Source of the DNA: Rhodosorus marinus CCMP1338
Taxonomy: Eukaryota; Plantae; Rhodophyta
Length of the DNA stretch: 64,000 nt
NCBI GenBank assembly: GCA_029953675.1
Contig: JAMWBK010000011.1
Coordinates: 868,001 to 932,000, forward strand
Direction of reading: 5' to 3'
In this document: piece after piece, positions 4,331 through 63,876 of the stretch
Layout of the letters: every line of letters begins with the position of its first letter
How positions within the stretch are numbered: position 1 is the stretch's first letter
The notes under the pieces: generated by a model
The model's input: the letters and a program-made list of their open reading frames with translations, nothing else
What the model was told of the DNA's origin: nothing
Databases searched by the model: none
Made by a program: the position numbers and the translations under genes

Positions 4331-5686
4331 ATGACGTTTTCGGAGCTGTTTCCCGTGGCCGACGAGGTGTTGAAGGACTTTATCCTTCACAAGAGCGATG
4401 TGAAACTGTTCGACTTCAACTCTGCAAATGCGATGATGTTTCATATGAACGTGCTGCTGCACGAGGAGGTGATGAAGTCGCCGTTCTATGGGCTTCTGCA
4501 GGGGCTCTCCAACCCCGTGTTCATGCTTTCTACAAAGTACTGTGAAGACGTGAGGATAGGAATGGGTTGGATTTTTGAGGACTTGGGGCCGCTTCTGGAA
4601 TACCCTTCCGGTGAAGGAGGCGTTCACGGGGTACAAGAGGCGGTCACTACCGAACGGATATGTATCTTCAAGCACAATGGCCGAGCTCGCTTGATCTGCA
4701 CACACCCTGGAGATGACAATGGAATTCCGTTCTACAACCTTGAGGAGATAAATATGCGGCAAAACTGCAACGAGGTTGGTGTTCTTGACAGAGAGACAGG
4801 AAACAAGTTCTTTTCAGTGAAGCAGATGGCGACGAGACCCTGTGTTATATGTCGTGCCAGGGGGGATGGCTGCTGCTGCTCGGAAGTGATGATGTCGAGG
4901 GGGTTTGGAGCTATGCCTATCGAGACAGAAGAACGAACCATGGAAAGATTGGATTTCAGTGACCAGGCTTTTACAGTTGCGAGCAGGCAGTGGTTGTCCG
5001 GGAGGTTCGGGTTTCACGCAGACGGACTTCCTGCCTTTTCGATTAACTCGTGGATACTATCATCTGGAGATTTATTTAACAAGGCCAAAGTCTATCTGGT
5101 GCAGCAACAGGCACAGCAATCGACAAGACTACGCCCTCCGTTGTCACGCTCGCCCTTGGAGAGATCGATATTTTCGATGATGACCGAAAAACCGCTGCGC
5201 AAGAAAGCATTGACATTTGGGGAACCGAAGCAGGTATTGATGGATGCCATTCCATCGACGGACGCTGAGACGTCGGAAAATCTGGTCGATAGGGAGCGGG
5301 TGAAATGCGACCAGTGCGATGCTTCGTTTGGAAGCGGATGGGGCCTGCGAAGGCACATTGCAGGAGTGCACGAGAAGAGCCGCAACTTCACGTGCGAATT
5401 CTGTCCAAGAACTTTCAAACAAAGCGGACACCTGCACGAGCACATACGCGTGTACCACTCGGAAAATGGGGGCCACGACTGCGAGATCTGTGGTAAGCGT
5501 TTTGGAGTGAAATCGAAACTGGACCGGCACGTTATTCAGAAGCACATGAATGTCAAGGAGTTTGAGTGCAAGCTGTGCCGGAGAAGGTACAAGGACAAAC
5601 ATTCGCTGAATACACATACGAAACGGAAGCACGCTTGTGAAGAGGGACAAAGCGCTAGCGAGGAAAGAAACCGAGGCGAGGGATGA
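4331..5686 (+). CDS. C2H2 zinc-finger protein (4 fingers) with unrecognised N-terminal domain; array copy 2
   Basis: Intronless 451-aa ORF. N-terminus MTFSELFPVADEVLKD matches copies 3 and 4. Contains RPCVICRARGDGCCCS and four C2H2 fingers. An in-frame TAA lies 9 nt upstream of the ATG. Confidence 0.92.
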   Translation: MTFSELFPVADEVLKDFILHKSDVKLFDFNSANAMMFHMNVLLHEEVMKSPFYGLLQGLSNPVFMLSTKYCEDVRIGMGWIFEDLGPLLEYPSGEGGVHGVQEAVTTERICIFKHNGRARLICTHPGDDNGIPFYNLEEINMRQNCNEVGVLDRETGNKFFSVKQMATRPCVICRARGDGCCCSEVMMSRGFGAMPIETEERTMERLDFSDQAFTVASRQWLSGRFGFHADGLPAFSINSWILSSGDLFNKAKVYLVQQQAQQSTRLRPPLSRSPLERSIFSMMTEKPLRKKALTFGEPKQVLMDAIPSTDAETSENLVDRERVKCDQCDASFGSGWGLRRHIAGVHEKSRNFTCEFCPRTFKQSGHLHEHIRVYHSENGGHDCEICGKRFGVKSKLDRHVIQKHMNVKEFECKLCRRRYKDKHSLNTHTKRKHACEEGQSASEERNRGEG

Positions 5687-7176
5687 CGCGGTTGGAAAAA
5701 GCCAGTTTTGCTCTGTCTCTTCTTCGTAAGACTTGCAGCCTAAAAGCAAGAATAGCAGCTGCAATCCTGCGGATCCTCGTTTCGCCGGGAAGGGAACTTC
5801 ATTGGCCCGAGACAGCGTTCGAGGCTATGGAAAAGCGCCTATAGTCTTTCGCGGGACTGAGTGCTTCCGTAGTGGCTCTTAAGTACGATGCGCGATGGCT
5901 TCGTAGTCAGAATACATGCCGTCAAGCGCACTTGCATAAGCGCAGACGCTTGTGCAGGGCGGACTCCTTAACTCCTCGTTCAGATAGTGTCGATTTGCGA
6001 TGGATTTGGAGTGACGGAGCTGATTGGGAGGTCAATTCCCATGCTCTACTATCAACTGAAGCCACTCGGAGGAACACATGTGGACCCCAAACCACGAGAG
6101 GGTACCTTGTTTCCGAAGAGTCAAGAGGAGAATGTCTACAGGCACAACTTCGACAGCTATAAACCCACCCGCGGCCTCACACACGGCGTTCAAAATTCGA
6201 AGTATGTCGTATAATCATTAACAAACTCTGACAGCACTAAACTATACCGAGGACAATCGATTTCGGGATCTTCAGTAGCAGTTCCAGATGACGCTAGGCT
6301 AGACACACTGTGTTGCCACCGCAGACGAAAGGTCTGCTCAAAACACAACCTGGAGCATTGTGAGGACTGTCCCTTTTCCTTCCTCGGCCATCTTTTTGCC
6401 AAGGAAGCCTTACTCGACGGCAGTTCCCAGGCAAAAGAGACAGCTCTCCGGGAATGTCGTGACCAGTTATAACGGCCTTCAGAAACAAGCTTGAACATTC
6501 ATTTTGCGGCGGGATCACTTCTACGCCCCTAATCGCCACTGGTCAAAACACGCACCTCAAACTGCCCCGACAACCGTATGGGGTTGCACAGACTGCTCAA
6601 GCGAGGAGAGCCGTCTAGCCAACAGTCCCGCTACCCTTCTTTACAGCACCTATGATGTCAGGTTGGTACATGTATGCTGCAGCACTTATATACTGAAAAC
6701 CATCTAACTGATGATCTCCACCAGCAGTGTCCAGAAGGCTATCCTACTCTGCTCAATCTCCACGCTTCAGGGTGATCTCCTTCCTCACGGGATTTCTCTC
6801 TGTACATTTGCTGATGATAAAAGAAAAAGCTCTGTGGGATTTTGGGGCTTCGCGGGGAAGATGGAGGGAGAGCTCGGGAACTGAATGGGATGAGTTGCTT
6901 GTTGGTATCTTGAAGCTCTTCAATATAAGGCAAGCAGAAGGAGGTATGTTTTGAGATTAGGTATTGTAGCTCACGCTATGCTGCTGCGAGCTTGAAGTCA
7001 TTGCAGGAGGGTGGCTTTTGGGGATGGGAGAAGTGAAAAATGGGTCAGCGAGAGCGGGGGGTATTCGAGGGACGAAGTTGTTCGTGGTCTTGTTTCGGTT
7101 GAGTAGTCTTGGATGAAATCACCGGAGGTTGGTGTTTTTGGGCTTTTTAGGTTTGGTTTTGAGAGGAAGAAGAACA

Positions 7177-8491
7177 ATGGAGTTTGAGGAGATGATTCCA
7201 GTGGCGGATGAGGTCTTAAAAGACTACATGCTGCATAAGGGTGAAGTGAGAGTGTTCGACTTTGGTTCGGCTTCACCGATTATGATTGATGTAAAGGTTA
7301 TTTTCCACGAGGAGGTGATGAGGTCGCCGTTCTATGGAATCCTCAAGTCGTTTGAGAATCCCATTTTCGTTACGTCAGTTAAGTACAAGGAGAAAGTTCG
7401 GATAGGAATGGGCTGGTCTTTTGAGGATTCTGGGCCTCTGATCGAGCATTCCAAGGGGAATGGAGGCTGGCATTCAACTTCGGAAGTGACCACGACCACC
7501 AGGATTTGCTTTTTCGAACACAAGGGTTGCGCTCACCTCCTGTCTACACCTCGGGGCGGAGATACGCCCGGCCAACCGTTCCTACATGTGGTTCAGAAAG
7601 ACGGAGAGACGAACTATCAGGAAGTAGGGATTCTGAACGAAGAGACAGGCGCGAAAATTTTTGGAATTAGGCAGTCCGCCACACGTCCCTGCGTCTTCTG
7701 CTCAGCAAGGGATGAGCCATGTCTGTGTTCCCGGAAAATGATCTCGAGGAGCTTTGGTCCTCCTTCGCTGCGGAAGGAAAAGTTCCTCGCCGGAACCTTA
7801 AGCATTCGACGACGGCGCTTTCAAAAGCACAAGCGATCAGTGGCTTTCAGGGAGATGGAATTTTCACGTGAACGACATGCCCGCATTCTCCACTCACGCC
7901 ACGGTGCTCTACGCCGGGACGATGTTCGAGAATGCGAAAAACTTCCTCTGCCAACGGGAAATAATGAAATCTGCAATCCTCTACGAACCAGTATCTTCGT
8001 CATCGGATTTAGAGAATGTGGCTTCAATGCATCTTGAAGGTGTGCGCGGCTCTGTTGCGGAGCTTGGAGTAGACCTTGACATCTCGGATGGGATGAGCAG
8101 CGACGCAAAAGACACGCCTGCAAAGGTTTACGAATGCCGGAAATGTGACACCGTGTTCAGACGCGCTTACGACTTGAAAAGACACGACGCAGGTGTACAC
8201 CAGATTAGCAGAAGCTTTGCCTGCGATAAATGCTCTAGGACCTTCAAGCAGAAGGGACACCTGAACGAACACATGAAGGCGTACCACTCCGAAGCCGGTG
8301 GCCATGAGTGTGAGGTATGCGGGAAGCGATTTGGAGTCAAATCCAAACTCCTACGGCATATAGTGGGAGTCCATACAAACATGCGACTGTTTCCGTGCAA
8401 GTACTGCCGTAAGAAGTACAAGGAGAAGCACCTCCTGAACCACCATCTCAGACATAAGCACCCAAGTGAGAACCCGATCACTACTGATTAG
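7177..8491 (+). pseudogene. C2H2 zinc-finger array copy 3 with a +1 frameshift at ~7800 (pseudogene or assembly indel)
   Basis: Homology to the paralogues runs in the frame of ORF 7129 up to ...EKFLAGTL, then continues in the frame of ORF 7868 as AFDDGAFKSTSDQWLSGRWNFHVNDMPAFS. Removing one A at 7800/7801 restores a linker of the same length as in copy 2. Confidence 0.85.
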
Positions 8492-9448: not shown

Positions 9449-10332
9449 CTGACAAGGCTCCATATTGGTCTGGCCAAGCGGACTTGGTTTTGAGGACCTA
9501 GTCCGCCGCGGACGGTATTCTGAGATGGTTGTTTATGACTGACCAGATATGGTACGATATGACTGGATGCAGTCAGTTACGGTACCAGAGCTTTGCTCTC
9601 GTCTTGATATACGGTTGGAACAATTCCCCCTCCGGGCCAGCTACATTGTCCTACCGTTAGTCTCGTTCCTAGGCGTTCATCGTTGTAGTTCGAAGAAACG
9701 CTGGAGCAAAACCACGAGCATCCGAGGAGCTGACGAGGCGGGTATTTCAGCCGGTCTGCCTTAACACACCCCTTGTTAAAATTTGAAGTACTCTGGAGTA
9801 GCCTCGAGCGTCCCGCGCTAATCTCCCCAACAGCCACCCGCGGCCTTGTCGACGCCCAGCTGGGCGGACAGATGTAAGTCCACTAGTGAGAGTCGTACCC
9901 AAAAAGCTAAAGATAAGCTTCCGACCGACATCCATAGCTCGATCTGATTCAGGCCACACCATCTCAAACTGGTGTATAAGACCCTATGGAGGGTCCAAAA
10001 ACAGGTTCTTCTAAACTAAGTTTGGTGTAAACTTATCAACCTGTCCGTTAAGATCCTTTGAGGGGCTGAACCAGCAAGCTCACGTCCTAGCTCGGTCCCC
10101 ATGCAGTCGGGCGTACTCTCTGGAAAGTGCGGACCGATGTACTAGAAATATCTGAGCTGAAGGTGGAGAGGGGAGATTGGGTGCTTGGTCGGAGAGAGCA
10201 CCTGGATTCGTGAAAGAGAAGGACAAATGGAGGAGAGAACTCGCTGGTTTGGAGAGAGGCTTTTGGCCGGTTAGTAGAGATCTGACAAGTTTTTTCGATT
10301 CGGATGTGAAAGGTGTTGGCATTCCTTCAACG

Positions 10333-11640
10333 ATGGAGTTTTCGGATATGGTTCCGGTCGCGGATGAGATTCTGAAAAACTGGATCCTCCACAAGGCTGA
10401 TGGAAAAGTATTCACTATGCAGGATTCTACCCCAATTTTGGTGAACGTCAAGGTGACGGCTCACGAGGCGGTCATGAAGTCGCCTTTCTTCGGGCTCCTG
10501 CATTCCTTTGAGCTGCCCTGCTTCTTCCTCAGCATGAAGTACAGTCCAAACGTCCGGCTCGGGATGGGCTGGACTTTTGAGGATCCCGGACCTCTGGTGG
10601 AGCATCCGTCTGGTGGCGGAGTGAGCCACCGTCGGAGGGAGGTCCTGAGCTACCACCGCTTCTGCATGTTTGAATGGAACGGTGCAGCGAACATGTTCGT
10701 CACGGTTGTCGGAGGGGACTCGCCAGGACTTCCATTTATTCGGGTAATTGAGGAGGATGGCGCTGCCAACTTTCAGGAGGTCGGAATTCTTGACAACGAG
10801 AACGGCAGTAAGCTGTTCAGCGTTAGCCAGACGTGCGTTCGGCCTTGCTACTTCTGTTCAGCGAGGAACGAACCATGCTCTTGTTCCCATGAGATGACGC
10901 TGAGAAGCTACGGACCTCAAATCCCTCAGGGAAAAGATGAGTTGGGGGCGCGGGAGTTTGTGTTCGAGGACGCCCCGTTCAACTACATAACGCAGAAATG
11001 GATGAGCGGAAAGTGGGGATTTCATTGCGACGGACGACCAGCGTTTTCCACGGACGCCGTCGTCCTAACGGGTGGCGCGCTCTTTGAGAGAGCTCGGAAC
11101 TACCTGAGTCAACAGGAGGTAGAGAGACGGTCCACGCCACTCCATGCAAGGTCGCTCTGGGGCTCTCAAAGCAGCCTCTCCCTGCTTACACTAGGGGAGG
11201 TCGACGAGGAAACGTTTGTCGACGACCTTGAGGATTCAAATTTCTTCGACAGCGATTCAAAGGCATCTGCTGTTCAACTTGCATGTGCGAGCTGCGGCGC
11301 GACGTTCAGGCGTGCGTACGATGTTCGGAGGCATATTGATACAGTACACAGACAGAGCCGGGACTTCCCTTGCAAGCAATGCTCGCGAACGTTTAAACAG
11401 AAAGGACACCTGAATGAGCATATCAGGGCATATCATTCCGATCACGGAGGACACTCCTGCAGTCTCTGCGGGAAAAGATTTGGAATCAAGTCGAAACTTG
11501 ACAGGCATATTTCTGGAGTGCATCTGTCCCTGCGACTGTTCGAGTGCAAGTCGTGTGGAAACAAGTACAAAGAGAAACACTTTCTCACGAGACACATGAA
11601 GAAAAAGCATCCAGAACTTGTCGGCCTGGTTACTACGTAG
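10333..11640 (+). CDS. C2H2 zinc-finger protein (4 fingers) with unrecognised N-terminal domain; array copy 4
   Basis: Start placed at MEFSDMVPVADE by paralogue alignment (the ORF is open further upstream, from 10177). Contains RPCYFCSARNEPCSCS and four C2H2 fingers. Confidence 0.92.
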   Translation: MEFSDMVPVADEILKNWILHKADGKVFTMQDSTPILVNVKVTAHEAVMKSPFFGLLHSFELPCFFLSMKYSPNVRLGMGWTFEDPGPLVEHPSGGGVSHRRREVLSYHRFCMFEWNGAANMFVTVVGGDSPGLPFIRVIEEDGAANFQEVGILDNENGSKLFSVSQTCVRPCYFCSARNEPCSCSHEMTLRSYGPQIPQGKDELGAREFVFEDAPFNYITQKWMSGKWGFHCDGRPAFSTDAVVLTGGALFERARNYLSQQEVERRSTPLHARSLWGSQSSLSLLTLGEVDEETFVDDLEDSNFFDSDSKASAVQLACASCGATFRRAYDVRRHIDTVHRQSRDFPCKQCSRTFKQKGHLNEHIRAYHSDHGGHSCSLCGKRFGIKSKLDRHISGVHLSLRLFECKSCGNKYKEKHFLTRHMKKKHPELVGLVTT

Positions 11641-12271
11641 GACCCTGGAATGTGGCTAGGGCAAGCTGAACCAAAACGGGGATGCTCGCCGTTGACCAAA
11701 ACGAATAGACTCGTGGATCAAAGTGCATATAGAAAAGTCTTCCGTTGTCTAGGGCCTGGAGCCCGCCTTTTAACTTTACCGAGCACCACATCTTGCTGAA
11801 CTTTCTTGAGTTGTAATAAAGCTTTGGGAAGAAACCGGTCTCTGAGATGCTGTTATTCAAGGACGCTGCCAACATCGAGTGCGGTGTTAAAATACAGTAT
11901 GGAGTATGACGTTGGTCACAGGAGCAGGCTGGAGAACCTTTGACGAGAGTGGTAATCCATACTTAGGTCATTTCAAAGGGCGATGGAAGTTGTTTATCAA
12001 ACTTGACATCTTTGAAGGCCCTGCCAATCGCGATGATCGAATCACCACGATGGCAGCAAGGATCCCTCACGGAATGGAAATATTCCATTGGAGGTGGTCG
12101 TCGGCCTCGAAGGGCACACTTTCAATCTCTACGCAGGGCGTTTGAAGTGATCCCTATATTTGTACGTGGGAGACGAATAAGACCAGACTCAGCAAATCAT
12201 GAGTATTTTTGTCTTTCTACGCATCCCTTTGCTCCCTTTCGAGATAAGCACATCCATGCAGTGACCATGAT

Positions 12272-18274: not shown

Positions 18275-19640
18275 ATGGATCTTGGATTCGTGGGATCGAG
18301 TTTCGGGGTTAGTAGCCCGAGACGCGTGGGGAGATGCAGGCAGCAGCAGGTGGTTATGATGGCTGAGGGATCTCCCAAGAGGGTACTGGTTATTGGTGGC
18401 ACTCGTTTCAGTGGTCTGTACTTGACGAAGGTTCTGGCAGATAGTGGACATGATGTCGTTCTGTTTAACAGAGGCAACACTCCCGTTGGAGACAAGAGTT
18501 TAATGGTAAGAGGTTTGAAAAGTTTTCTATCTAGCTTCGATCGATCGCTTTGCGTTTGAATAATTAGTTGCTCGAGCTGAATTCCAGAATCGATCGCCCT
18601 TGTTTTCTGTCCAGGTTCCTGGCGAAACTGAGGAAGAGTTCGAGGCCAGAAACGCCCGTACAAGTACGATCATTGGTGACCGAACGGACGGGGATGATAT
18701 GGTGGCCAAGCTCAAGGATGAAGAGTTCGATGCCATTTACGACAACAACGGTCGCGAGCTTGATGATTCGAAGGTAGCTACTTGAACCGCGAAGCAGAAA
18801 GCTCTTTCGTTTCTAATGGCATCTTTCCTGTCTTTTCCGCGCTGTAGCCCCTCATCGATCTGTACAAAGGCCGTGTCGAGCACTACGTATACATGAGCAG
18901 TGCAGGAGTGTACCTCAAGTCTGACATTATGCCCCACTGTGAACCGGACGCAACGGATCCGAAATCCAGACACAAGGGCAAGCTTCACACCGAGGCGTAC
19001 CTCATTGAACAGGAGATTCCTTTCACTTCTATAAGACCTACCTATATTTACGGCGCGCTCAACTACAACCCTCTCGAGCAGTGGTTCTTTGAGCGAATCG
19101 CAGCCGGAAGGCCAGTTCCAGTGCCTGGTAGCGGCCTGAACTTGACCGGTCTAGGCCACGTTCAGGACCTTGCAAAAGCGATGGCCGCGGTCTTAGGAAA
19201 CGAGAAGGCGATCGGACAGGTCTACAACATCCAGGACGAAAAAGCGATCACTTTCGACGGAATCGTGCGTGCATGTGCACAAGCCGCGGGCAAGGACCCC
19301 GCGAGCGTCGAAATCGTCCACTACGATCCAAAAGATTTTGATTTTGGAAAGAAGAAGGCGTTCCCAATGAGACCACAGCACTTTTTCACCTCACCACAAA
19401 AGGTACCTTGCAAACAACACATCTTGTCGGGAAAGAAAGCCCAAAAAACTCACCACCCAACCCCTGTCATCTCCTTCCAAGGCACTCACCGACTTGGACT
19501 GGTCAATCGAATTCAACACCGAAGTAGGCCTCAAGGACTCGTACGAGAACGACTTTGTCATCAAAGAGAAGAATGGAAAGCTTAAGAATGACTTCTCCAC
19601 GGACGATATGGTTCTCTCGGAGATGGGCGTTGCAGTCTAA
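18275..19640 (+). CDS. CSP41B: Chloroplast stem-loop RNA-binding protein CSP41b-like (NAD(P)-binding epimerase/SDR fold); exons 18275-18505, 18615-18773, 18848-19402, 19482-19640
   Basis: VLVIGGTRFSG, YMSSAGVY, IRPTYIYG, and the family-typical KDFDFGKKKAFP. Transit-peptide-like N-terminus. Three in-phase GT-AG introns. Confidence 0.92.
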
Positions 19641-30780: not shown

Positions 30781-33117
30781 TCGAAGGATACTCGCCAAGT
30801 CACCATTTACAACGCCTCCACTCTTAAGGATGGGTTGAATACACGGACATCGATCCCAAGGTGCTCTGACTTCGCCACGCGAGTGGGGAGAGCAAACAAC
30901 ATCAAGTCAATCAAACTAGCGCCCTGCAAAAGTCAATAACCCCAGCGTCGGGAGTTTCTTGCAAAGTACGTCTCCTAAACCAATGTCAATGACAATCACG
31001 CGGTTGCCGGATTACGAAGCGGTCCAGTTTCAGTATAGTGGGTTCCATCTTGGTACTCAGATGAGTTCCATTGGAATTCGAAACTCTACATACTAGGAAG
31101 TCCCTTGACGTTCAGCACTGCTGAACCGCTATTTCTTCGCCCATCGCAACACAAATCCCCCGCCCAATGCGACTGGTCGTACAGGAAATATCTCAGCAGT
31201 GTCAGGAGATTGATATACGTTGATTGATCCTATTTTCAATCACCATCAAGAAATAGACCAACAAACATCAACCAAATATCAATATTGATTGATATTCATC
31301 AATATCGGTAGATTCGATCTATTTATCCTGTACCGAGAAGGGCAAAGATAATATGTTCGTAATTAGTTCGCGGATATTGTTGCGATCGGATATCGTTATT
31401 AACGCTTCATCTGGTCTGAATATGGCAAAAATGTATACAGCGATAACGTCAGGGGTATAAATTTTCCGCGTGTACAAAAAAATCACTTGTGAGTCATATG
31501 TAAGTGCGCTCCTAATTTCCGAAATTAATGATACTGAGAGACTATTAATTGGTTAGCTTAGACTGAAAGTCGTGAACTATTCGCCCAAGCCGGGTTTGAA
31601 CTGTAATAATCATATCAATATTTAAATATTCAAAGAAAAAAGTATATGATTGGATTGCAACAGATGTATGGCATTGTTTATTGGATAATTGAAGTATCCA
31701 ACCTAGGTTCCACTGCAATGGCAATGACCGATCAGTTTTCGAATAGGAATCCCCAGCCCTTGGTTTCTGTAGCCATGGTCAGCCAGCAATGTTCGGAATC
31801 TTAGGGGGAGGATTTTCCACCACATGCCTAAAAAAGCATTCAATCCCTGGATCTAAAAGTAGTTGAAATATCTCCTTAATCATGTTCATTCCGAGTCGAA
31901 CGTCTAGATAAACTGAAAAAAAGAAAACTTATAGGCCATGGGTATCTTAATTATGATTCCGCGGGAACGTTCGAGCATAGTTCCCGCCCAGACTGAGAAG
32001 ATACAAGGAGATGTTTGTGCAGGGGGGTTCCAGTTTGGGTGCTATCTTACAAGATCTCCACAACTGTAACGCACTGGTGTCATATCTTCTATCGTACTCT
32101 ATATAATAATGAAATAAAATAAAATAAATGATACCGATTATCGAATATACTGGTAACAAGTCGTATATCTATTTCTGCAGCCAAAAATCCGAACATGCTG
32201 CTCAAGAAATATTTATTATACATATTGTCACATAAACGATATTGTTCAAAGCCGTTGGCTTTGGATCTTCTGATTCCACCACATGTTGAAGAGCGGACAA
32301 CAAGCATCAAACTCGATGCAGTCGGAATTCCAACGAATCTCACCTAACCCCCCTTACAAACCGATTTCAAGAAACCCTATCAGATCCCGATTTTCAAATT
32401 TTAGCAAAAGACAAAACCCGCTCACTCCAATAATATCCGTTTCGAATAAAAATACCCTGGAAACCTCCAATTTTGGAGCACCCCCCTTTTCCGACAAGAA
32501 TTGCTAGCACTTCAAACCCCCCTCTGCCCCGCTACAAAATTCATCCTCATGGGCATTCAATGTCCTTACTGATTTTCCATCAAAACAACACAGGTTGTTA
32601 AGAAAAAGAGGCAAAAAAAGATGAATTGGCAGCTATTGGTCTTTTTCAGAAGTTTCTTAGCCCCTTCGTTTTGCTTAGGCAAAAAGGAATTTCTTCATCT
32701 CAGGAAAATTCCAGCACATCCTTCTCCAGGCCGTTCATTTTGATCTGGGGAGTGGCCCTTTTTTAATATGGGCTGTTGTCATAATTAACAAAACTAGTTC
32801 TATAAAGCAGGAATAATATAAGTTTTTGGAAATATATGGATTTGATTTAGATGCTCAGGGCTTGATTTGGAGAGCCGCACGCTTTCTTAAGATGTTCAGG
32901 AAGTTGATGGCTGCCTTGCATTTCGCGCTCATATAGCTGGCGCTCAAAGAGTGTTGGTGATGAGTGGGAAGTGGGGGAGGGTGAAAGGCAGGTTGGACTC
33001 TTAAGGATGGAGTATACGTTTTGAACGAGTAGGATGATAAGATGAGATAGGAGAGAGTGGTTGGATTCTTTGAATGAGGGTGTATTTAGTTGTTGTCCAT
33101 ATTGTTATTTAGTCGAG

Positions 33118-34260
33118 ATGGCGTTTGTGGGTAGTATTGGGGTAGGTGGCGCCCGGGCTGGGCAGGGGCGGAGGTGTGTATCTATGAAGGTACAGACCAT
33201 GCCGACCGCTGTGCGGTTGCAGAGCTTGAGGTCGTCTGTAAATAGTCCTGTTGGAAAGGTCCGCAGCAGAGCTCCATGCAATGTAAATGACGCGCTGGAC
33301 TACTTGCTTAGTCGGGGTGTGAGGATTGACGCTGTGGAAGTGGGAAGGAGCGTAATGGACGTGTTGAGGGAGCTGCATGTAGAGGAAAGCACCGCCCTTG
33401 CTGGCTTGTTAAGGGGTATGCCCCTCACTGAAGTTGAAATTTCCAATATGTTTGGAGAGGAGACCCTTGAAGTTTGGAGAAGGGATAGAGAATTCTGCGG
33501 GATGATGCTTGCAAACCCTTTGGAAACGCCGAGACTTTCACTGGTGTCTATGATTGGCGACTTTCAATGCCTGGTCATTGAGCTCGCTCATGCAGTAGCT
33601 AGTCTACGACATCTTCCGATGAGTTCTTTGTCCAAGAAGACCAAGGAACATTTGCAGCAGATACTGAAAGTCCACGTCCCGTTGGCGGACACCCTGGGCC
33701 TGAAGGCGGTGCATGCGGAGCTCGAAGAACTGGCGTTTATGCACCTTTACCCGAAGGAGTACGACCAAATGTGCGTGCTTGTCGGGGAGCGGTTGGAAAA
33801 GTACGGAACTTTGTTGGGAGACACAATCAGGGAGATGGAGCTTGCGCTGGCAAATCTACCGCAGTTCCAGAAGGTATCATCATTCCGCGTGTACGGCCGT
33901 ATCAAAAACTGCTTCTCGATTTACCGAAAGATGATGAGCAAGGAACTCAAGTTTGAAGAGGTTATGGACTTCGTAGCGCTTCGAGTCATCCTGAACCCGA
34001 AGACCGGTGTTTCTGAACAAGAGGCGTGCGAACGGGTGATGCGAGAGGTGACGAAGCGCTGGAAGACCGTGGAAGGCACAACCAGGGACTACATCAGCCA
34101 TCCGAAGGATAACGGATACCAGTCCCTGCATACCACGATTCTGCCAGAGGGCCTCCCAATGGAGGTCCAGGTTCGCACGGAAAGAATGCACGAGTGCTCT
34201 GAAATCGGCAGTGCTGCCCACTACAACTACAAGTTCGAGGGCCTGCACCAGCTGATCTAG
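33118..34260 (+). CDS. RSH: Plastid-targeted RelA/SpoT homologue ((p)ppGpp synthetase) with degenerate HD hydrolase region
   Basis: MAFVGS transit peptide. Synthetase motifs GRIKNCFSIYRKM, DFVALRV, DYISHPKDNGYQSLHT, EVQVRT, AAHYNYK. AGLLRG replaces AxLLHD. Confidence 0.93.
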   Translation: MAFVGSIGVGGARAGQGRRCVSMKVQTMPTAVRLQSLRSSVNSPVGKVRSRAPCNVNDALDYLLSRGVRIDAVEVGRSVMDVLRELHVEESTALAGLLRGMPLTEVEISNMFGEETLEVWRRDREFCGMMLANPLETPRLSLVSMIGDFQCLVIELAHAVASLRHLPMSSLSKKTKEHLQQILKVHVPLADTLGLKAVHAELEELAFMHLYPKEYDQMCVLVGERLEKYGTLLGDTIREMELALANLPQFQKVSSFRVYGRIKNCFSIYRKMMSKELKFEEVMDFVALRVILNPKTGVSEQEACERVMREVTKRWKTVEGTTRDYISHPKDNGYQSLHTTILPEGLPMEVQVRTERMHECSEIGSAAHYNYKFEGLHQLI

Positions 34261-40282: not shown

Positions 40283-41816
40283 ATGGGGTTGGGATTTCTG
40301 GTTTGGAGTGGTGGTGGGGGGGTTAGGGTTAGGAGCCGTCGTCGGTTGGTTGGGTGTTCCGTGGTAGCGCCTGCGGAGGAGCAGAGCGTGAGGTTGGCGC
40401 TGGGGAGGTTGAAGGTTGAGGTGCTTCCGGAGCCGCTAAAGTTTTCTTCGTCATGGAGGACGATGGTGGAGACGTTGGAGAGCATGGGATTGACTGGGGG
40501 GCGGCTGTCAAAGCTCCTGAGAAAACGGCCAGCGCTTTTGGAGCTGGACCCGATGGAGACGGTGATTCCTTTCGTTAGAACCGTCACGACGGTTTTGGAT
40601 TATGATACCAAAGGTGCTTCCATTCTGCTGTGCAAGAGACCGTCCCTAATGGACTACCCGGAGATAGCCGTCGCCGAAGTCCTTTCCCTTCTGCTGTCGC
40701 TCGGAATTGAAGAACGTCTCCTCAGGTTCCTCCTCCTAAGGTTTCCCGGCATCGCAGAAATCAACCCATCACAAGTGCGATCGTCGCTTAGGTGCCTCGT
40801 AAAGGACGCACACTTTGAGGTCAACGAGCTATGGCCTCTTATCAGAGAATCGCCGTGGGTAATGTGTTACGACGTCGAGACCGAAACTACTCCAGTCATC
40901 GAGTTCCTCGAGAAGATTGGCGTACAGAATGTGAAGCTTATCATTCAGACTGAGCCAAGGGTAAGGAAAGGAAGAACAAACTTTTCGAATCTTTACAAAG
41001 TCAAACTTCTCATCACGAGCCAAGCCACGGTTTTCGGGTTTTCGGATGCTGAAAGGAGCCTTTTGATTCCTTCTGTGATCGCTTTCGTAGGTGCTTGGAT
41101 GTTCTGTACCTGAACAGCTCGAACCAGTGTACAGATTGTTGTTATCAATTGGATTAAGTAGGAGAGCCATTCCTCTGGTTTTACAGCTCTTTCCTTCCGT
41201 TCTTATTGCGAGCATTGAGGAGAAGCTAGTGCCGAATCGCGACTACCTGATCTCCTTGGGGTTGACCCGGGGAGATGTGGCTCATATGGTTCGGGCATTT
41301 CCACAGATCTTGCTGATGGATACTGAGGAGGAGATGGCAGAGGTTGTAAGATTTTTGGTAGCAAAGGGAGTGGAAGATATCGCAGAGTTTGTCTTTAGGC
41401 TGCCGTCTGTTTTGTCGTACGATGTGAATTCGAATATTAAGCCCAAGCTGAGCTTGCTGGAACGGGTGGGATATGAGATGCGTCAGATTGTTGAGTTTCC
41501 GGGGTGTTTATCATTTTCTCTGGAGGACGTGATCATCCCCAGGATCGCATTTCTACGCTATCTCGGCGTGGACGTGAGTTCCATGCGACTGCCCATCGTC
41601 TTGGCTTGTAGCGAAGACCGTTTCTGCGAACGGGTGGCTTCAAGATCGACAAGCGAATTTCAAGATTTTTGTAGGGACTTGGCAGAGAAGAGAGGCGTGA
41701 ACCGTCATCCGGGAAAACGACGGAAGAGGAAGAGAAAAGGGAGGACAAGGAAGGACAACAGAGCGTTCCCAACGAGGTGCAGGTTCCCTATCAGAGAGTT
41801 GTGTTCTCAACGGTGA
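40283..41816 (+). CDS. mTERF-family organellar protein; exons 40283-40960, 41091-41816 (C-terminus uncertain)
   Basis: Repeated mTERF-like units (FPSVLIASIEEKLVPNRDYLISLG, LPSVLSYDVNSNIKPKLSLL, FPGCLSFSLEDVIIPRIAFL). GTAAGG donor at 40961, phase 0. Confidence 0.88.
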
Positions 41817-49750: not shown

Positions 49751-51316
49751 TCAAGGGAACTGCTTTTGCACGTAAGAGACCCTGAGTTCAACAAAACGAT
49801 CGCAAAGTGCAGAAGTGCATGACCGGATAAGCCGAGGAGCAGTCCCTGGTCGAACCGGAAGCCCCAGGTCAAACGTGTTAGGGGCAATAAGAGTATCGTG
49901 CCCACTGGTAGTATCCTCATCCATGACGGTGACCTCGATCTTGCCGCTGTATGTCCTCGTTCCAAGTGACCTTTCATAGTTCCATACCGGGTTGTGGTTG
50001 CCCCCGATCGTCGGGGTCTTCAGATAACCAATGGAATATCCGTTGGCATTGAAGGCTCTCACTTCAACGTACGGGTCCGATTTACCCGCAAAGAGACCAT
50101 CCCTGTCCGGAAGGTTGTGTCCCTTCACCACTTCAACAGTTATCTCACCATATGGATACTCACAGTTCCGACCGAACCAGCCTCGAGCGCACTCGCACCA
50201 AAAGTCCGAGATGTTGTCAATGCATTTTCCTCCGTTTTGGCACGGATTTGGATCGCACTCGTTGCGGTCGGGAATGAACTCGCTCTTAAACCTCAGCTTG
50301 TAGTCACAGTTACCAGGAGAAGCACAGAGCACGTTGTTCATCGTTCCAGGACGCACGGTCACCAACTGATCATAGATGATGACGTCGTCCCCACTCAGAT
50401 CGTCGCTATCAAACACAGATATTCTGTAGAACATGTAGGAGCCTGGGATAAACTGGTATCTCTTGTTCCAAACGGGCGTGTTATCGTTGCTGATAACGTT
50501 CGTCTGTCTCACGGTCCTGCTTCCGTCCGCGTGGACCGCTTCAATTCTGACGTAGGAGTCCGGTTTCTTTGAGCTGAAACAGCAGGAGTCCTTATTGGGG
50601 AAGTCTTTGCCCTCAATGATGGTTAGAGCCAGCGATCCTTTCAGTCCCTCGGCTGGGCAGTAGTACATTCTGTTGATAGTGTTAATGTCAGCAGCACTGA
50701 GGTCCGTTGCGGTGCCAAGTGGGCGGGAGGCATTGATTGTCTTTTTTCCGTTGCGGCTGAGGAAGAAGCTTCCGTGGTGCATGATAGAATTGTAGTCGTA
50801 GCTGATCCCGTAGGTATCGACCTTTTTCCATGGCTGTGACTTAAACTGCTTCTTGTACTCGTCGCCGACGTTGTTCAGGAAAAGTGAGATGTATGAGGTC
50901 CTCTGCGGATGCACATGCTGGTCGAACAGTCCGATAGCATGTCCAAGTTTGTGCATGACGCGAGCCTTGTCGTCAGAAACGTCGCCAGCGCAATTTCGCC
51001 TAATGTTCACTCTTTGCACTCCACCCATGAATCCAACTTCTTCTTTGTAACATTTAACAGTCTTGGACAGGAATACGATGCGGTTGTTTGCTTGACTGCT
51101 CTGAATGAACAGCAGGCACGTCTCCTCGGCAAATCGCTCAATAGCGCTGCGGATGTCCCGTTTGTCCTGCGACGTCAACGTGGAATGGAAATCGTAAAAG
51201 ACGGCCTTATCGGGCCACTTTTTCGCGTTCGATCTCACTCCTAGTGCTGCGTAGCTGGTATTGATGAGCATGGCCAACAAGGCACACGCCAACACGATCT
51301 TCATTCGCCCGAACAT
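49751..51316 (-). CDS. Secreted astacin-like (M12A) - C2 - EGF - C2 protein, predicted catalytically inactive (copy 1)
   Basis: Signal peptide (M)[18 protein letters not shown], start at 51316 or 51304. [12 protein letters not shown] replaces HExxHxxGxxHE; SIMHH. Two C2 domains (PDSYV/NTPVWN, SDPYV/HNPVWN) flank [14 protein letters not shown]...[12 protein letters not shown]. Confidence 0.9.
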
Positions 51317-59880: not shown

Positions 59881-60426
59881 ATGAGTATATTTGTATTGAA
59901 CGTGAGGTTGCCGAAATCAGCTATGGATTGTTTGGATTTGAGCTCTGGAGTGGAGACTTGGGCGGACTGGGAGGTTTCCTCTGCGACTGTACCGTCTTCG
60001 GATGTTGCTGATGAGTTTGAGAATGCTGCGCTGGCAGAAGAAATCATGAACGAGGTGCTTTCTGGCAGTCTTCCGACAGTGCTTGGCCTCGAGGATTCAC
60101 GTGAATTTGCAGATGAGTTCTGTACGTCCGACTTTGAAAGTTCTTCGGAATCGTCTTCGTGTACGATTTCCGTTTGTGAGGAACAAGATGTCTCCCACCA
60201 CTGCCGTGCACCTGTGTCCAAGCCCTCAAAGAAGCGGGTGTACAAGAAAGAGGCATGCCCGGTGTGCAACGAGGTATTCTTCCGGCGACACGAGATGATG
60301 AGACACCTCAAGGCATCGCACCTGAAGATAAAACCATTTCAGTGCTCCTTCTGCCCGAAGAAGTTCGCGAGAAATTCCCATGTCAAATCGCACGAGAGCA
60401 GGATTCACCTCAAACCCGCAGTCTGA
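59881..60426 (+). CDS. Small C2H2 zinc-finger transcription factor (2 fingers, acidic N-terminus); start may be at 59923
   Basis: CPVCNEVFFRRHEMMRHLKASH, linker LKIKPFQ, CSFCPKKFARNSHVKSHESRIH. Confidence 0.88.
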   Translation: MSIFVLNVRLPKSAMDCLDLSSGVETWADWEVSSATVPSSDVADEFENAALAEEIMNEVLSGSLPTVLGLEDSREFADEFCTSDFESSSESSSCTISVCEEQDVSHHCRAPVSKPSKKRVYKKEACPVCNEVFFRRHEMMRHLKASHLKIKPFQCSFCPKKFARNSHVKSHESRIHLKPAV

Positions 60427-62292: not shown

Positions 62293-63876
62293 CTAATTCT
62301 GGTAGTGGTAGTTGACCTCAACGTCCACCCAACGAGAGCACCTGGATGGACTGTCACAGACCTTGACAATGTAGGGCTGGGTTCCCTGAAGGACTGGATT
62401 GTTCAACTGGAATGTTCTCATCGGAAGGAGGGTATCATCCCCGCTAGTTGTGTCGTGGTCCTTGGTTGAAACGGCGAAGGATTTGAACGACCTGTAGCCG
62501 AGCGAGCTGGCGTAGTTCCAGACGGGATTATGGTTTCCTCTGATAGTAGGTGTCTTCATGGTGACTGTCCTTCCGTCCACGTCAGTTGCCACAATAGTTA
62601 CGTATGGATCAGAGTCACCTGCACCAAAACCGTCCTTGTCCGGAAGGTTGTGTCCTCCGAGTACCTTGAGGATGAGCTTTCCGAACGGGCGCTCGCAGTT
62701 TACGCCAGTGAACCCACGCGGGCAGTTGCATACGTAGTCTGCTTCGAGATCTACGCATTCTCCTCCATTCTCGCAAGGGTTTCTTGCGCATTCATCACGG
62801 TCCGCGGTCAACTCTGTCCTAAACCTTAGCACGCCCTTGTCCGTCGCTCCTGACGAGTGGTACATGACGTTTTGGGATGATCCAATTCTAACAGGGAATA
62901 TTTGGCTGTAGAAGATCAAGTCGTCATCAGACCCGCTGTCGTCATCGAGGACGTGGACCCTATAGTACATCCATTCGTCAACGTTGAAATCGATCTTCTG
63001 GTTCCATTCGGGATTGTTGTTGTCACGGATCACTCTCGTCTGCTGGGTAACCTTGTGTCCGGCGGCGTTGTAAGCTTCCACTTTGACGTACGTATCTGGT
63101 CTCGACCTACCGAAGTAGATGCTAGGGTCCTTATCCGGCAATCCCTCCGCGCGCTGAATGGTGATCGAGAACCTCCCGTTAGTACCCGTTCCCGGACAGG
63201 TGTACATTCTGTTGAGCGTCAGGATGTCGCTTGAGGTCAGGTCGGTTGAGCCTCCCAACGGGTATGCGGGGTTGTACTTGTAGGTCAGAGTCCTGCGGCC
63301 GTTTCCACTCAAGAAATTGTTTCCATAGTGCATGATCGATCTGGTGTCATATCGTACACCGTAATGATCAACATCGCTCCACGACTCCTTGTCGAACTGT
63401 TTTTCGTATAGGTCGTCGTCTGTTCTCACGTTATTGAGGTGCACGTTGAGGTAGGAATCACGGTCTGGGCGGTTGTGTTCGTGGAAGAGGCCAAGAGCGT
63501 GTCCGATCTCATGTACAATCTCCGTGTAGGTGTTTTCAAAGCCATCGTCGCATCCCGATCCAAAGTTGACCGTCTGAACACCTCCCTTAAAACCAATAGT
63601 CTCCGAGAAGCATCTCGGTTCGCTAGCCTGGAATCGGATCCTGTTCCGCGCACGTGTGGACTCGATGAAATTTAGACACGTCGTTTCCTGGTACCGCTTG
63701 CTGCTTCTCTTGATATCGGTTTCCTGCCTGTACGACAGACTCGAGTCGAGCTCGTAGAACACCGTACGATGGGGCCACTTCCTGCTGTCTGATCGAACTG
63801 CTGCCGATCCACTACTAAACTCGATCACCGAGGCGATCGCAGCCATCGTCAATAGTATCTTCACCATTCCAGCCAT
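62293..63876 (-). CDS. Secreted astacin-like (M12A) metalloprotease - C2 - EGF - C2, catalytic motif intact (copy 2)
   Basis: Signal peptide. [19 protein letters not shown] and Met-turn SIMHY. C2 domains with Asp-rich loops ([17 protein letters not shown]; [17 protein letters not shown]). [37 protein letters not shown]. Confidence 0.94.

Follow-up and report, generated by a model that had tools for sequence, protein, structure and literature searches.

A probably maintained, non-catalytic astacin homologue with C2 and EGF domains in the red alga Rhodosorus marinus

We analyzed 64,000 nucleotides of the red alga Rhodosorus marinus CCMP1338, positions 868,001 to 932,000 of contig JAMWBK010000011.1 of the nuclear genome assembly GCA_029953675.1 (Lee et al. 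2023, PMC10250338). This whole stretch is called the window here, and coordinates are counted from its first letter. The window carries two paralogous genes for proteins with an astacin-like metalloprotease domain. One of these, copy 2, has a canonical active site, and the other, copy 1, has a degenerate one. The results described below lead us to consider it probable that copy 1 is a selectively maintained, non-catalytic homologue of the astacins (family M12A). The features of the two genes are as follows.

49751-51316, minus strand (about 917,751-919,316 of the contig): copy 1, pseudo-astacin; complete single-exon open reading frame (ORF) of 521 amino acids plus stop codon
51248-51316, minus strand: predicted signal peptide of copy 1, residues 1-23 (by inspection of the sequence and alignment)
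50654-51220, minus strand: astacin-like (M12A) domain of copy 1, residues 33-221 (Pfam PF01400)
50918-50953, minus strand: degenerate zinc-binding motif of copy 1, residues 122-133 (translation of the window)
50897-50917, minus strand: position of the lost RxDRD signature of copy 1, residues 134-140, HVHPQRT where copy 2 has HNRPDRD
50774-50788, minus strand: Met-turn SIMHH of copy 1, residues 177-181 (translation of the window)
50270-50641, minus strand: first C2 domain (C2a) of copy 1, approximately residues 226-349 (Pfam), with the terminal Cys pair CASPGNC
50165-50257, minus strand: EGF domain of copy 1, residues 354-384 (Pfam, E=7e-10), with six Cys
49772-50149, minus strand: second C2 domain (C2b) of copy 1, residues 390-515 (Pfam), with the terminal Cys pair CTSALC
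62293-63876, minus strand (about 930,293-931,876 of the contig): copy 2, canonical paralogue of 527 amino acids with the architecture of copy 1
63478-63513, minus strand: canonical zinc motif of copy 2
63325-63339, minus strand: Met-turn SIMHY of copy 2

Read from the ATG at 51316, copy 1 is open for 521 codons, or for 550 codons if an upstream TTG is taken as the start, up to the stop codon at 49751-49753. Each of the other five frames of the same stretch contains from 8 to 37 stops. The GC content at third codon positions (GC3) of copy 1 is 0.63, equal to that of the neighboring genes. The domains of the encoded protein follow one another in the order signal peptide, astacin-like domain, C2, Ca-binding EGF, and C2. 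The match to PF01400 extends over model positions 1-189 of 189 with a score of 138.8 bits versus a cut-off of 22.5 (E=2e-40), and the PDB sequences matched by copy 1 were those of BMP1 (E=1e-21), TLL1, and astacin. Across the family alignment, four cysteines of this domain (C67, C89, C109, and C220) do not vary, and they align with cysteines of BMP1, which suggests that copy 1 has the two disulfides of the astacins (C42-C198 and C64-C84 in astacin). Both C2 domains were found by Pfam with E=3e-25. All five synaptotagmin-type Ca2+-ligand positions of C2b are Asp (D-x6-SDP and MDxDxxxxxD, aligned to the C2 domains of synaptotagmin-7), and the acidic loop residues of C2a are retained, with Asp at the Ca2+-ligand positions by inspection of the sequence and the alignment. 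The C2 domains of copy 1 are thus predicted to carry the five acidic ligands in loops 1 and 3 of Ca2+-dependent C2 domains and to bind Ca2+. The six cysteines of the EGF domain are invariant across the family alignment. By inspection, this domain also has the consensus D-x-N-E-C ... C-x-D-x4-F-x-C, which is that of a Ca-binding EGF (cbEGF).

Over their full length, copies 1 and 2 are 45% identical (E=4e-164). Both are encoded on the minus strand, their starts are 12,560 bp apart, and a tblastn search of the window detected no other copy. Both run from a signal-peptide-like N-terminus straight into a mature-type A(A/L)(G)VRS...KW sequence. Inspection of both copies revealed neither a prosegment nor an FxGD aspartate switch between the signal peptide and the mature-type N-terminus, and a prosegment was also absent in all of the Rhodosorus paralogues inspected.

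In astacins, the Glu of the zinc motif serves as general base/acid, zinc is coordinated by three His and a Tyr, and the mature N-terminus is bound by a family-specific Glu that follows the third His (PMC9848320). The motif of copy 1 has the pattern HKxxHxxGxxDQ versus the consensus HExxHxxGxxHE, so that the general-base Glu has become Lys, the third-ligand His has become Asp, and the family-specific Glu has become Gln. The Met-turn, SIMHH versus SxMHY, retains its Met (Met179), but the zinc-liganding Tyr has been replaced by His. Thus, four of the six functional residues (the motif Glu, three His, the Tyr, and the family-specific Glu) have been lost in copy 1. The RxDRD signature that follows the motif has also been lost, while all other Rhodosorus paralogues seen keep RPDR at these positions. 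The sequence of copy 1 therefore lacks what an active astacin is expected to have: the zinc consensus with its Glu, the Met-turn with its Tyr, and a prosegment that bears either an aspartate switch (FxGD) or a cysteine switch. A preliminary description of this DNA had reported the three motif substitutions, the SIMHH in place of SIMHY, an intact reading frame of more than 520 codons with signal peptide, EGF cysteines, and most C2 Asp residues kept, and a spacing of about 12.5 kb between the two copies. All of these were borne out by the translation of the window and of both copies, by inspection, by Pfam, and by the alignments, the signal peptide being a prediction. The loss of RxDRD in copy 1 and the lack of a prosegment in both copies had not been described. 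The His-to-Asp change at the third ligand is not inactivating by itself, since two paralogues, P0164 and P0179, combine this Asp with an intact HExxH and since Asp is a competent third ligand in the snapalysins. To the extent that a sequence allows such a conclusion, copy 1 is nevertheless almost certainly non-catalytic, and its ability to bind zinc is not conserved.

A representative search with copy 1 returned a 189-amino-acid fragment that was 88% identical (P0138) and, as its cluster mate, a protein that was 91% identical over residues 295-521 (P0283). Look-up of the clusters traced the closest relatives in this search to R. marinus. P0138 carries a MMETSP transcriptome identifier only, and P0283 carries both a MMETSP identifier and a JGI/IMG record. 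The latter is encoded by a transcript contig of 1475 nucleotides, L083, from JGI sample 3300017118, which belongs to another Rhodosorus strain and covers residues 87-252 of copy 1 (in another frame) and residues 295-521. The zinc motif of this orthologue is HKIGRGIGLFDQ and its Met-turn is SIMHH. Copy 1 and L083 share the Glu-to-Lys, His-to-Asp, Glu-to-Gln, and Tyr-to-His substitutions as well as the loss of RxDRD, and the orthologue additionally lacks the second zinc His (H126R), so that five of its six functional residues are lost. Because the substitutions are common to two strains, they predate the strain split and are not sequencing errors, a possibility that the preliminary description had left open. 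Other searches for orthologues of copy 1 were negative: in a word-indexed protein search, no relative exceeded 35% identity and none came from Rhodosorus, and a scan of metagenome contigs returned no orthologue, the best match being 32% identical over the astacin domain.

The ratio of nonsynonymous to synonymous substitution rates (dN/dS) between copy 1 and L083 was then determined for each domain. For the astacin part (residues 87-222) it was 0.118, with 28 synonymous (Sd) and 16 nonsynonymous (Nd) differences (Fisher p=4.6e-11), and it fell to 0.082 when the helix formed by residues 120-127 was left out. The values were 0.069 for the C2a tail, 0.087 for the EGF domain, and 0.159 for C2b, and the estimates agreed across four methods. 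For residues 128-185, a segment that includes the former third ligand and the Met-turn, dN/dS was 0.08, and for the ligand-bearing helix it was approximately 1.5, on very few sites. Of the 14 amino acid differences in the astacin domain, 5 sit in the 8-residue former active-site helix (P=2.6e-4). Nucleotide identity at the first, second, and third codon positions was 0.93, 0.96, and 0.78 in the astacin part and 0.96, 0.95, and 0.81 in the C-terminal part, and the alignment collapsed in the 3' untranslated region, right after the stop codon. This pattern suggests that constraint has been lifted at the catalytic center and retained on the astacin fold. The preliminary description had proposed that copy 1 is retained and had named as a test a domain-by-domain dN/dS comparison with orthologues of related strains; at 0.12 for the dead protease domain and 0.07 to 0.16 for the others, the values support retention by selection. 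The catalytic residues and RxDRD were lost before the divergence of the two strains, and strong purifying selection then acted over the length of the protein except for the active-site helix. Taken together, the shared substitutions, the dN/dS of 0.12, and the concentration of change in the helix point to copy 1 being a maintained protein under strong purifying selection, almost certainly non-catalytic, and not a decaying pseudogene.

The dN/dS between copies 1 and 2 was uninformative, as dS was saturated, and a relative-rate test and the orthologue comparison were used in its place. With four outgroups, copy 1 had 53 unique changes versus 38 for copy 2, a modest and mostly non-significant excess, and 7 of the changes unique to copy 1 fall in the active-site motifs. 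Copy 2 is 77% identical to the R. marinus transcriptome protein A0A7S3A5U5 (P0134), only 77% for this orthologue against the approximately 90% between copy 1 and its own. If both transcripts come from one strain, the dead copy 1 evolves more slowly than the canonical copy 2. No contig was on record for P0134 or for the second isoform, P0138.

The transcript contig L083 lacks 121 nucleotides relative to copy 1, which breaks its reading frame. The missing block is the following.

50435-50555, plus strand (antisense to copy 1): 121-nucleotide block that starts with GT and ends with AG; candidate antisense intron

The junction, near position 507-508 of L083, has a microhomology of 1 nucleotide and can be placed in two registers, one of which gives the GT-AG block. 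The chance of finding GT...AG ends on the antisense strand was estimated at approximately 0.8%. The simplest reading that this suggests is that L083 was assembled from a spliced antisense transcript of the copy 1 locus, which presumably came from an unstranded library. No long antisense ORF was found on L083. A repeat-mediated deletion or a reverse-transcription artifact, for which a nearby 7-nucleotide repeat (CTCCTAC) made a candidate, was rejected because the repeat and the junction are not in register and only 1 nucleotide of microhomology is present. L083 demonstrates that the locus orthologous to copy 1 is transcribed, and the break in its reading frame probably does not reflect a lesion in the genome.

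The AlphaFold model of copy 1 had a mean predicted local distance difference test (pLDDT) score of 72. The C2 domains were modeled with confidence, the first of them at pLDDT 80-93, while confidence was moderate for the upper subdomain of the astacin domain and poor for the lower one. In Foldseek searches, the model matched the astacin and BMP1 catalytic domains 1ast, 6saz, 3edg, and 3edh with target-normalized template modeling (TM) scores of 0.65-0.69. When hatching-enzyme catalytic domains are included, the target-normalized range was 0.61-0.69, and tandem-C2 proteins were matched as well. The model is consistent with an astacin fold of two subdomains, an active-site helix, and a Met-turn. 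The canonical copy 2, modeled with the same shallow alignment, was equally weak in its lower astacin subdomain, and the model is therefore uninformative on decay of the cleft in copy 1. Low AlphaFold confidence as a sign of structural decay was rejected on the same ground.

Copies 1 and 2 are not an isolated pair. Extraction of motifs from the matches of the representative search, together with look-ups of their sources, gave at least 8 R. marinus members of the astacin-C2-EGF-C2 family on at least 4 contigs. Only copy 2 among these 8 is canonical; 3 are clearly dead, and 4 have Asp or Asn as the third ligand. Apart from copy 2 and P0134, in which both the zinc motif and the Met-turn are canonical, the motifs are as follows.

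P0164 (KAJ8905543): zinc motif HELGHALGLYDE, Met-turn SAMHY
P0179 (KAJ8905601): zinc motif HEVGHALGLADE, Met-turn SIMQY
P0155 (KAJ8904749): zinc motif HEIGHVLGLYNE, Met-turn SVMQY
P0154 (KAJ8905551): zinc motif HELGHVLGMYNS, Met-turn SIMTM
P0230 (KAJ8903135): zinc motif HETGRALGLIDL, Met-turn SVMLY
P0145 (KAJ8905550): zinc motif YQLGKVLGMVET, Met-turn SIMIF

In all six of these paralogues the third zinc His is replaced by Asn or Asp, and various further residues have been lost. Three of the six are close neighbors, separated by no more than a few genes, on a single 3.19-Mb scaffold (NDN08_002050, 002057, and 002058). A signal peptide followed directly, without a prosegment, by A-V-R-[SD]-x3-4-W was observed in P0145, P0154, P0155, P0164, and P0179 and in the Logan-derived P0163. 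In a neighbor-joining tree, the Rhodosorus sequences were grouped with 71% bootstrap support, copy 1 was sister to copy 2 and P0134 (100%), and the other six paralogues formed a clade of their own (92%). Since copy 1 stands outside this clade, its third His was lost independently. The active/inactive pair that had been proposed at the outset is thus too narrow a description, given the at least 8 members on at least 4 contigs and the two unrelated genes that lie between the copies. Copy 1 derives from a canonical astacin-C2-EGF-C2 gene, itself without a prodomain, that was duplicated within the Rhodosorus lineage.

Loss of the HExxH Glu was also surveyed more widely. It was missing in none of 84 astacin domains from 80 metagenome loci and in 11 of 77 astacin-domain matches from the 71 closest astacin proteins among the representative matches listed, copy 1 included. 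The Glu-less state therefore appears to be uncommon in general and recurrent in this clade. Relatives without the Glu from outside Rhodosorus carry HTLGH, HLIGH, HIIGH, or HMIGH.

Comparison with known proteins places copy 1 in the astacin family (MEROPS M12A, PF01400), whose members include astacin, BMP1/tolloid, the meprins, and the hatching enzymes. It shares with them the full-length Pfam match, the two-subdomain fold, the four disulfide cysteines, the Met of the Met-turn, secretion by a signal peptide (predicted in copy 1), and an EGF domain, which is a common accessory. It differs from the active astacins in its HKxxHxxGxxDQ motif, its SIMHH, the absence of RxDRD and of a prosegment with an aspartate switch, its C2 accessory modules, and its red-algal host. 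Three proteins from eukaryote-like ENA contigs (P0001 to P0003) have the same domain order as copy 1 with Cys pairs after each C2 domain and are 33-35% identical to it over 92-95%. A shorter astacin-C2-EGF protein from the sponge Halichondria panicea, P0004 ("zinc metalloproteinase nas-4-like"), shows 31% identity over 69%. Unlike copy 1, all four have canonical active sites (HEIGHAVGFWHE, SIMHY) and none is from Rhodosorus, and P0001 to P0003 have an acidic prosegment of approximately 200 residues with the aspartate-switch motif FEGDI. P0001 and P0003 are intronless genes in a tandem pair; the nearest non-Rhodosorus relatives were seen as a tandem pair of intronless genes at 5713-7914 and 10001-12127 of a 240-kb eukaryote-like ENA contig (L001). 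The sponge protein among the nearest relatives raises the possibility that the red-algal family was acquired from an animal by horizontal transfer. The six Rhodosorus paralogues resemble copy 1 in species, prodomain-less architecture, and degenerate zinc sites but are only 29-35% identical to it, form a separate clade, and keep RPDR. None of them has Lys at the Glu position, and their substitutions differ from those of copy 1, with YQLGK in P0145 and HETGR in P0230.

A conceptual parallel is found in the ADAM (M12B) pseudopeptidases, such as ADAM7 (HQLGH) and ADAM29 (HHLGH) and also ADAM11/22/23 and unc-71, which have substituted general bases and/or zinc ligands and a conserved Met-turn and act in extracellular binding and scaffolding beside active paralogues (PMC11266112). 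Copy 1 is likewise a metzincin with a substituted general base and ligands that has kept the Met of its Met-turn. The ADAM proteins, however, are animal proteins of M12B rather than M12A and have disintegrin, Cys-rich, and transmembrane domains where copy 1 has C2-EGF-C2. The phenomenon is of a known kind, that of the metzincin pseudopeptidases, and what is unusual is the host, the architecture, and the missing prosegment. To our knowledge, pseudo-proteases are well documented for the ADAMs, rhomboids, and carboxypeptidases, hardly characterized for the astacins, and not characterized at all in algae; our literature searches on astacin pseudoproteases and on astacins in Rhodosorus found nothing specific.

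Copy 1 is probably a pseudoenzyme, with its catalytic residues lost in an otherwise intact homologue and the dead domain under purifying selection after that loss, as measured against one orthologue. Copy 1 is predicted to be secreted, as indicated by the signal peptide, the cbEGF domain, and the disulfide-type Cys pair that follows each C2 domain. It would be unable to hydrolyze peptide bonds and probably no longer needs zinc. In sea water, its C2 domains would be loaded with Ca2+ and could anchor it to an anionic surface (membrane or sulfated cell coat), and its dead astacin fold would serve as a conserved binding or scaffold module. Copy 2 would be released without the latency that the aspartate switch typically imposes on astacins, because the family lacks a prosegment. 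With the same targeting module in copies 1 and 2 and with no prosegment to keep the family latent, copy 2 could face competition from copy 1 and the other degenerate paralogues, either for its substrates or for docking sites. Such a role as a competitor or regulator is the most specific and the least supported reading of the data, and we consider it possible but doubtful. Of the putative roles named in the preliminary description (decoy, substrate trap, adhesin, or competitive regulator), a zinc-dependent substrate trap is disfavored because the orthologue lacks a further zinc ligand (H126R). A broader scenario can also be drawn, although we think it rather unlikely. In it, a lineage-specific group of prodomain-less, Ca2+/C2-targeted secreted astacins, possibly derived from animals, would have been turned for the most part into maintained non-catalytic binders, with one canonical enzyme left, and would serve at the surface of the algal cell in extracellular recognition, adhesion, or protease buffering. 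The dead paralogues would replace control of proteolysis by a prosegment, and copy 1 would be under a spliced natural antisense transcript.

Several points weigh against a maintained, non-catalytic copy 1. The selection test used one partial orthologue (residues 87-252 and 295-521) without a matched dN/dS control for copy 2, and L083 may be a spliced antisense RNA, which does not prove expression of the sense strand. The lower astacin subdomain of copy 1 was weakly modeled, although this carries no weight in either direction given the same weakness in copy 2, neither copy is among the genes on record for the assembly's RNA-seq-trained annotation, and nothing ties copy 1 functionally to copy 2. 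Moreover, its secretion, Ca2+ and lipid binding, and zinc loss are predictions from sequence alone.

Other explanations of copy 1 were weighed against the same evidence. It is unlikely that only the C2-EGF-C2 module functions, as a Ca2+-dependent surface or lipid binder, with the dead astacin domain kept for folding, secretion, or spacing and having no ligand of its own. The dN/dS values of the C-terminal domains, as low as or below that of the astacin domain, the free evolution of the former cleft helix, and the loss of a further zinc ligand in the orthologue would all fit this explanation. Yet outside the 8-residue helix the astacin domain, at 0.08, is as constrained as the EGF and C2 domains and more so than is usual for a passive spacer, and the segment of residues 128-185 also has a dN/dS of 0.08. 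Copy 1 might instead still be a hydrolase of altered chemistry in which His122, His126, Asp132, and His181 hold a metal, as in snapalysin-type metzincins. These four potential ligands remain in CCMP1338, and the occurrence of a third-ligand Asp beside an unaltered HExxH in P0164 and P0179 suggests that this Asp is tolerated in the family. We regard this as very unlikely nonetheless, because the metal site is not conserved, with Arg for His126 in the orthologue, the ligand helix shows no detectable constraint (dN/dS of about 1.5 on very few sites), and the general-base Glu is Lys in both strains, while no metzincin is known to work without this Glu (PMC9848320).

That copy 1 is a pseudogene that has as yet acquired no stop codon is most improbable and already largely refuted. 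It has lost its catalytic residues, no gene with its product is on record in the public annotation, and the orthologous transcript contig is out of frame. These observations are outweighed by the dN/dS of 0.12 in the protease domain (28 synonymous versus 16 nonsynonymous differences, p=5e-11), by 521 stop-free codons versus the 8-37 stops of the other frames together with the GC3 of a coding gene, and by a rate not significantly faster than that of copy 2. The frame break of L083, with its GT-AG ends on the opposite strand, looks like antisense splicing and not like a lesion. If L083 is best read as a spliced transcript of that strand, the conserved element could conceivably be the overlapping antisense RNA rather than the protein. 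However, the substitutions follow the codon periodicity of copy 1 (0.93/0.96/0.78) and no long antisense ORF exists, which makes this explanation barely credible. We therefore retain a selectively maintained, non-catalytic astacin homologue as the probable identity of copy 1.

Copy 1 documents astacins in a red alga. The 2023 review of the family counted fewer than 400 non-holozoan sequences and treated the prosegment as core architecture; red algae are not among the groups it lists, and the strings "Rhodo", "red alga", and "C2 domain" are absent from its text (PMC9848320). The astacin-C2-EGF-C2 arrangement without a prosegment thus has an accessory module that does not appear there. The Rhodosorus proteins belong to a small gene family that has for the most part lost catalysis and is nevertheless under strong constraint, and they offer a tractable unicellular system for asking why a dead metzincin fold is kept. 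They also flag two apparently unannotated genes in a reference assembly, and they change no general concept. Both copies were absent from the index of called genes for positions 914,207-934,782 of the contig, which lists only Sas10, NIF, the cyclin, and the zinc-finger gene. Exact look-ups of copy 1 (with two alternative starts) and of copy 2 also found no gene on record for GCA_029953675.1. These two clean single-exon genes for proteins of more than 520 amino acids thus seem to be unannotated in the public assembly while their neighbors are annotated.

Between the two copies, on the opposite strand, lie a gene for a PHO80-type cyclin and a C2H2 zinc-finger gene, both unrelated to the astacins. 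The cyclin ORF is identical to a product recorded for contig JAMWBK010000011.1 of GCA_029953675.1. The zinc-finger gene is small (59881-60426, plus strand) and has a 167-amino-acid product in the assembly annotation. Elsewhere in the window, on the plus strand, a tandem array of four paralogous genes (21-1196, 4331-5686, 7129-8491, and 10177-11640) was observed, whose products share an N-terminal domain and C-terminal C2H2 zinc fingers. In the third array copy, two overlapping ORFs (7129-8037 and 7868-8491) take the place of one, an indication of a frameshift or an intron. Three stretches hold plastid-related nuclear genes, as listed here; together with the eukaryotic density of ORFs, they mark the DNA as that of a photosynthetic eukaryote.

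33061-34260, plus strand: RelA/SpoT homologue with HD and synthetase domains
40283-41816, plus strand: two adjacent mTERF-like ORFs
18893-19585, plus strand: exon of a CSP41-type epimerase

The CSP41-type epimerase exon is 85% identical to a Logan protein.

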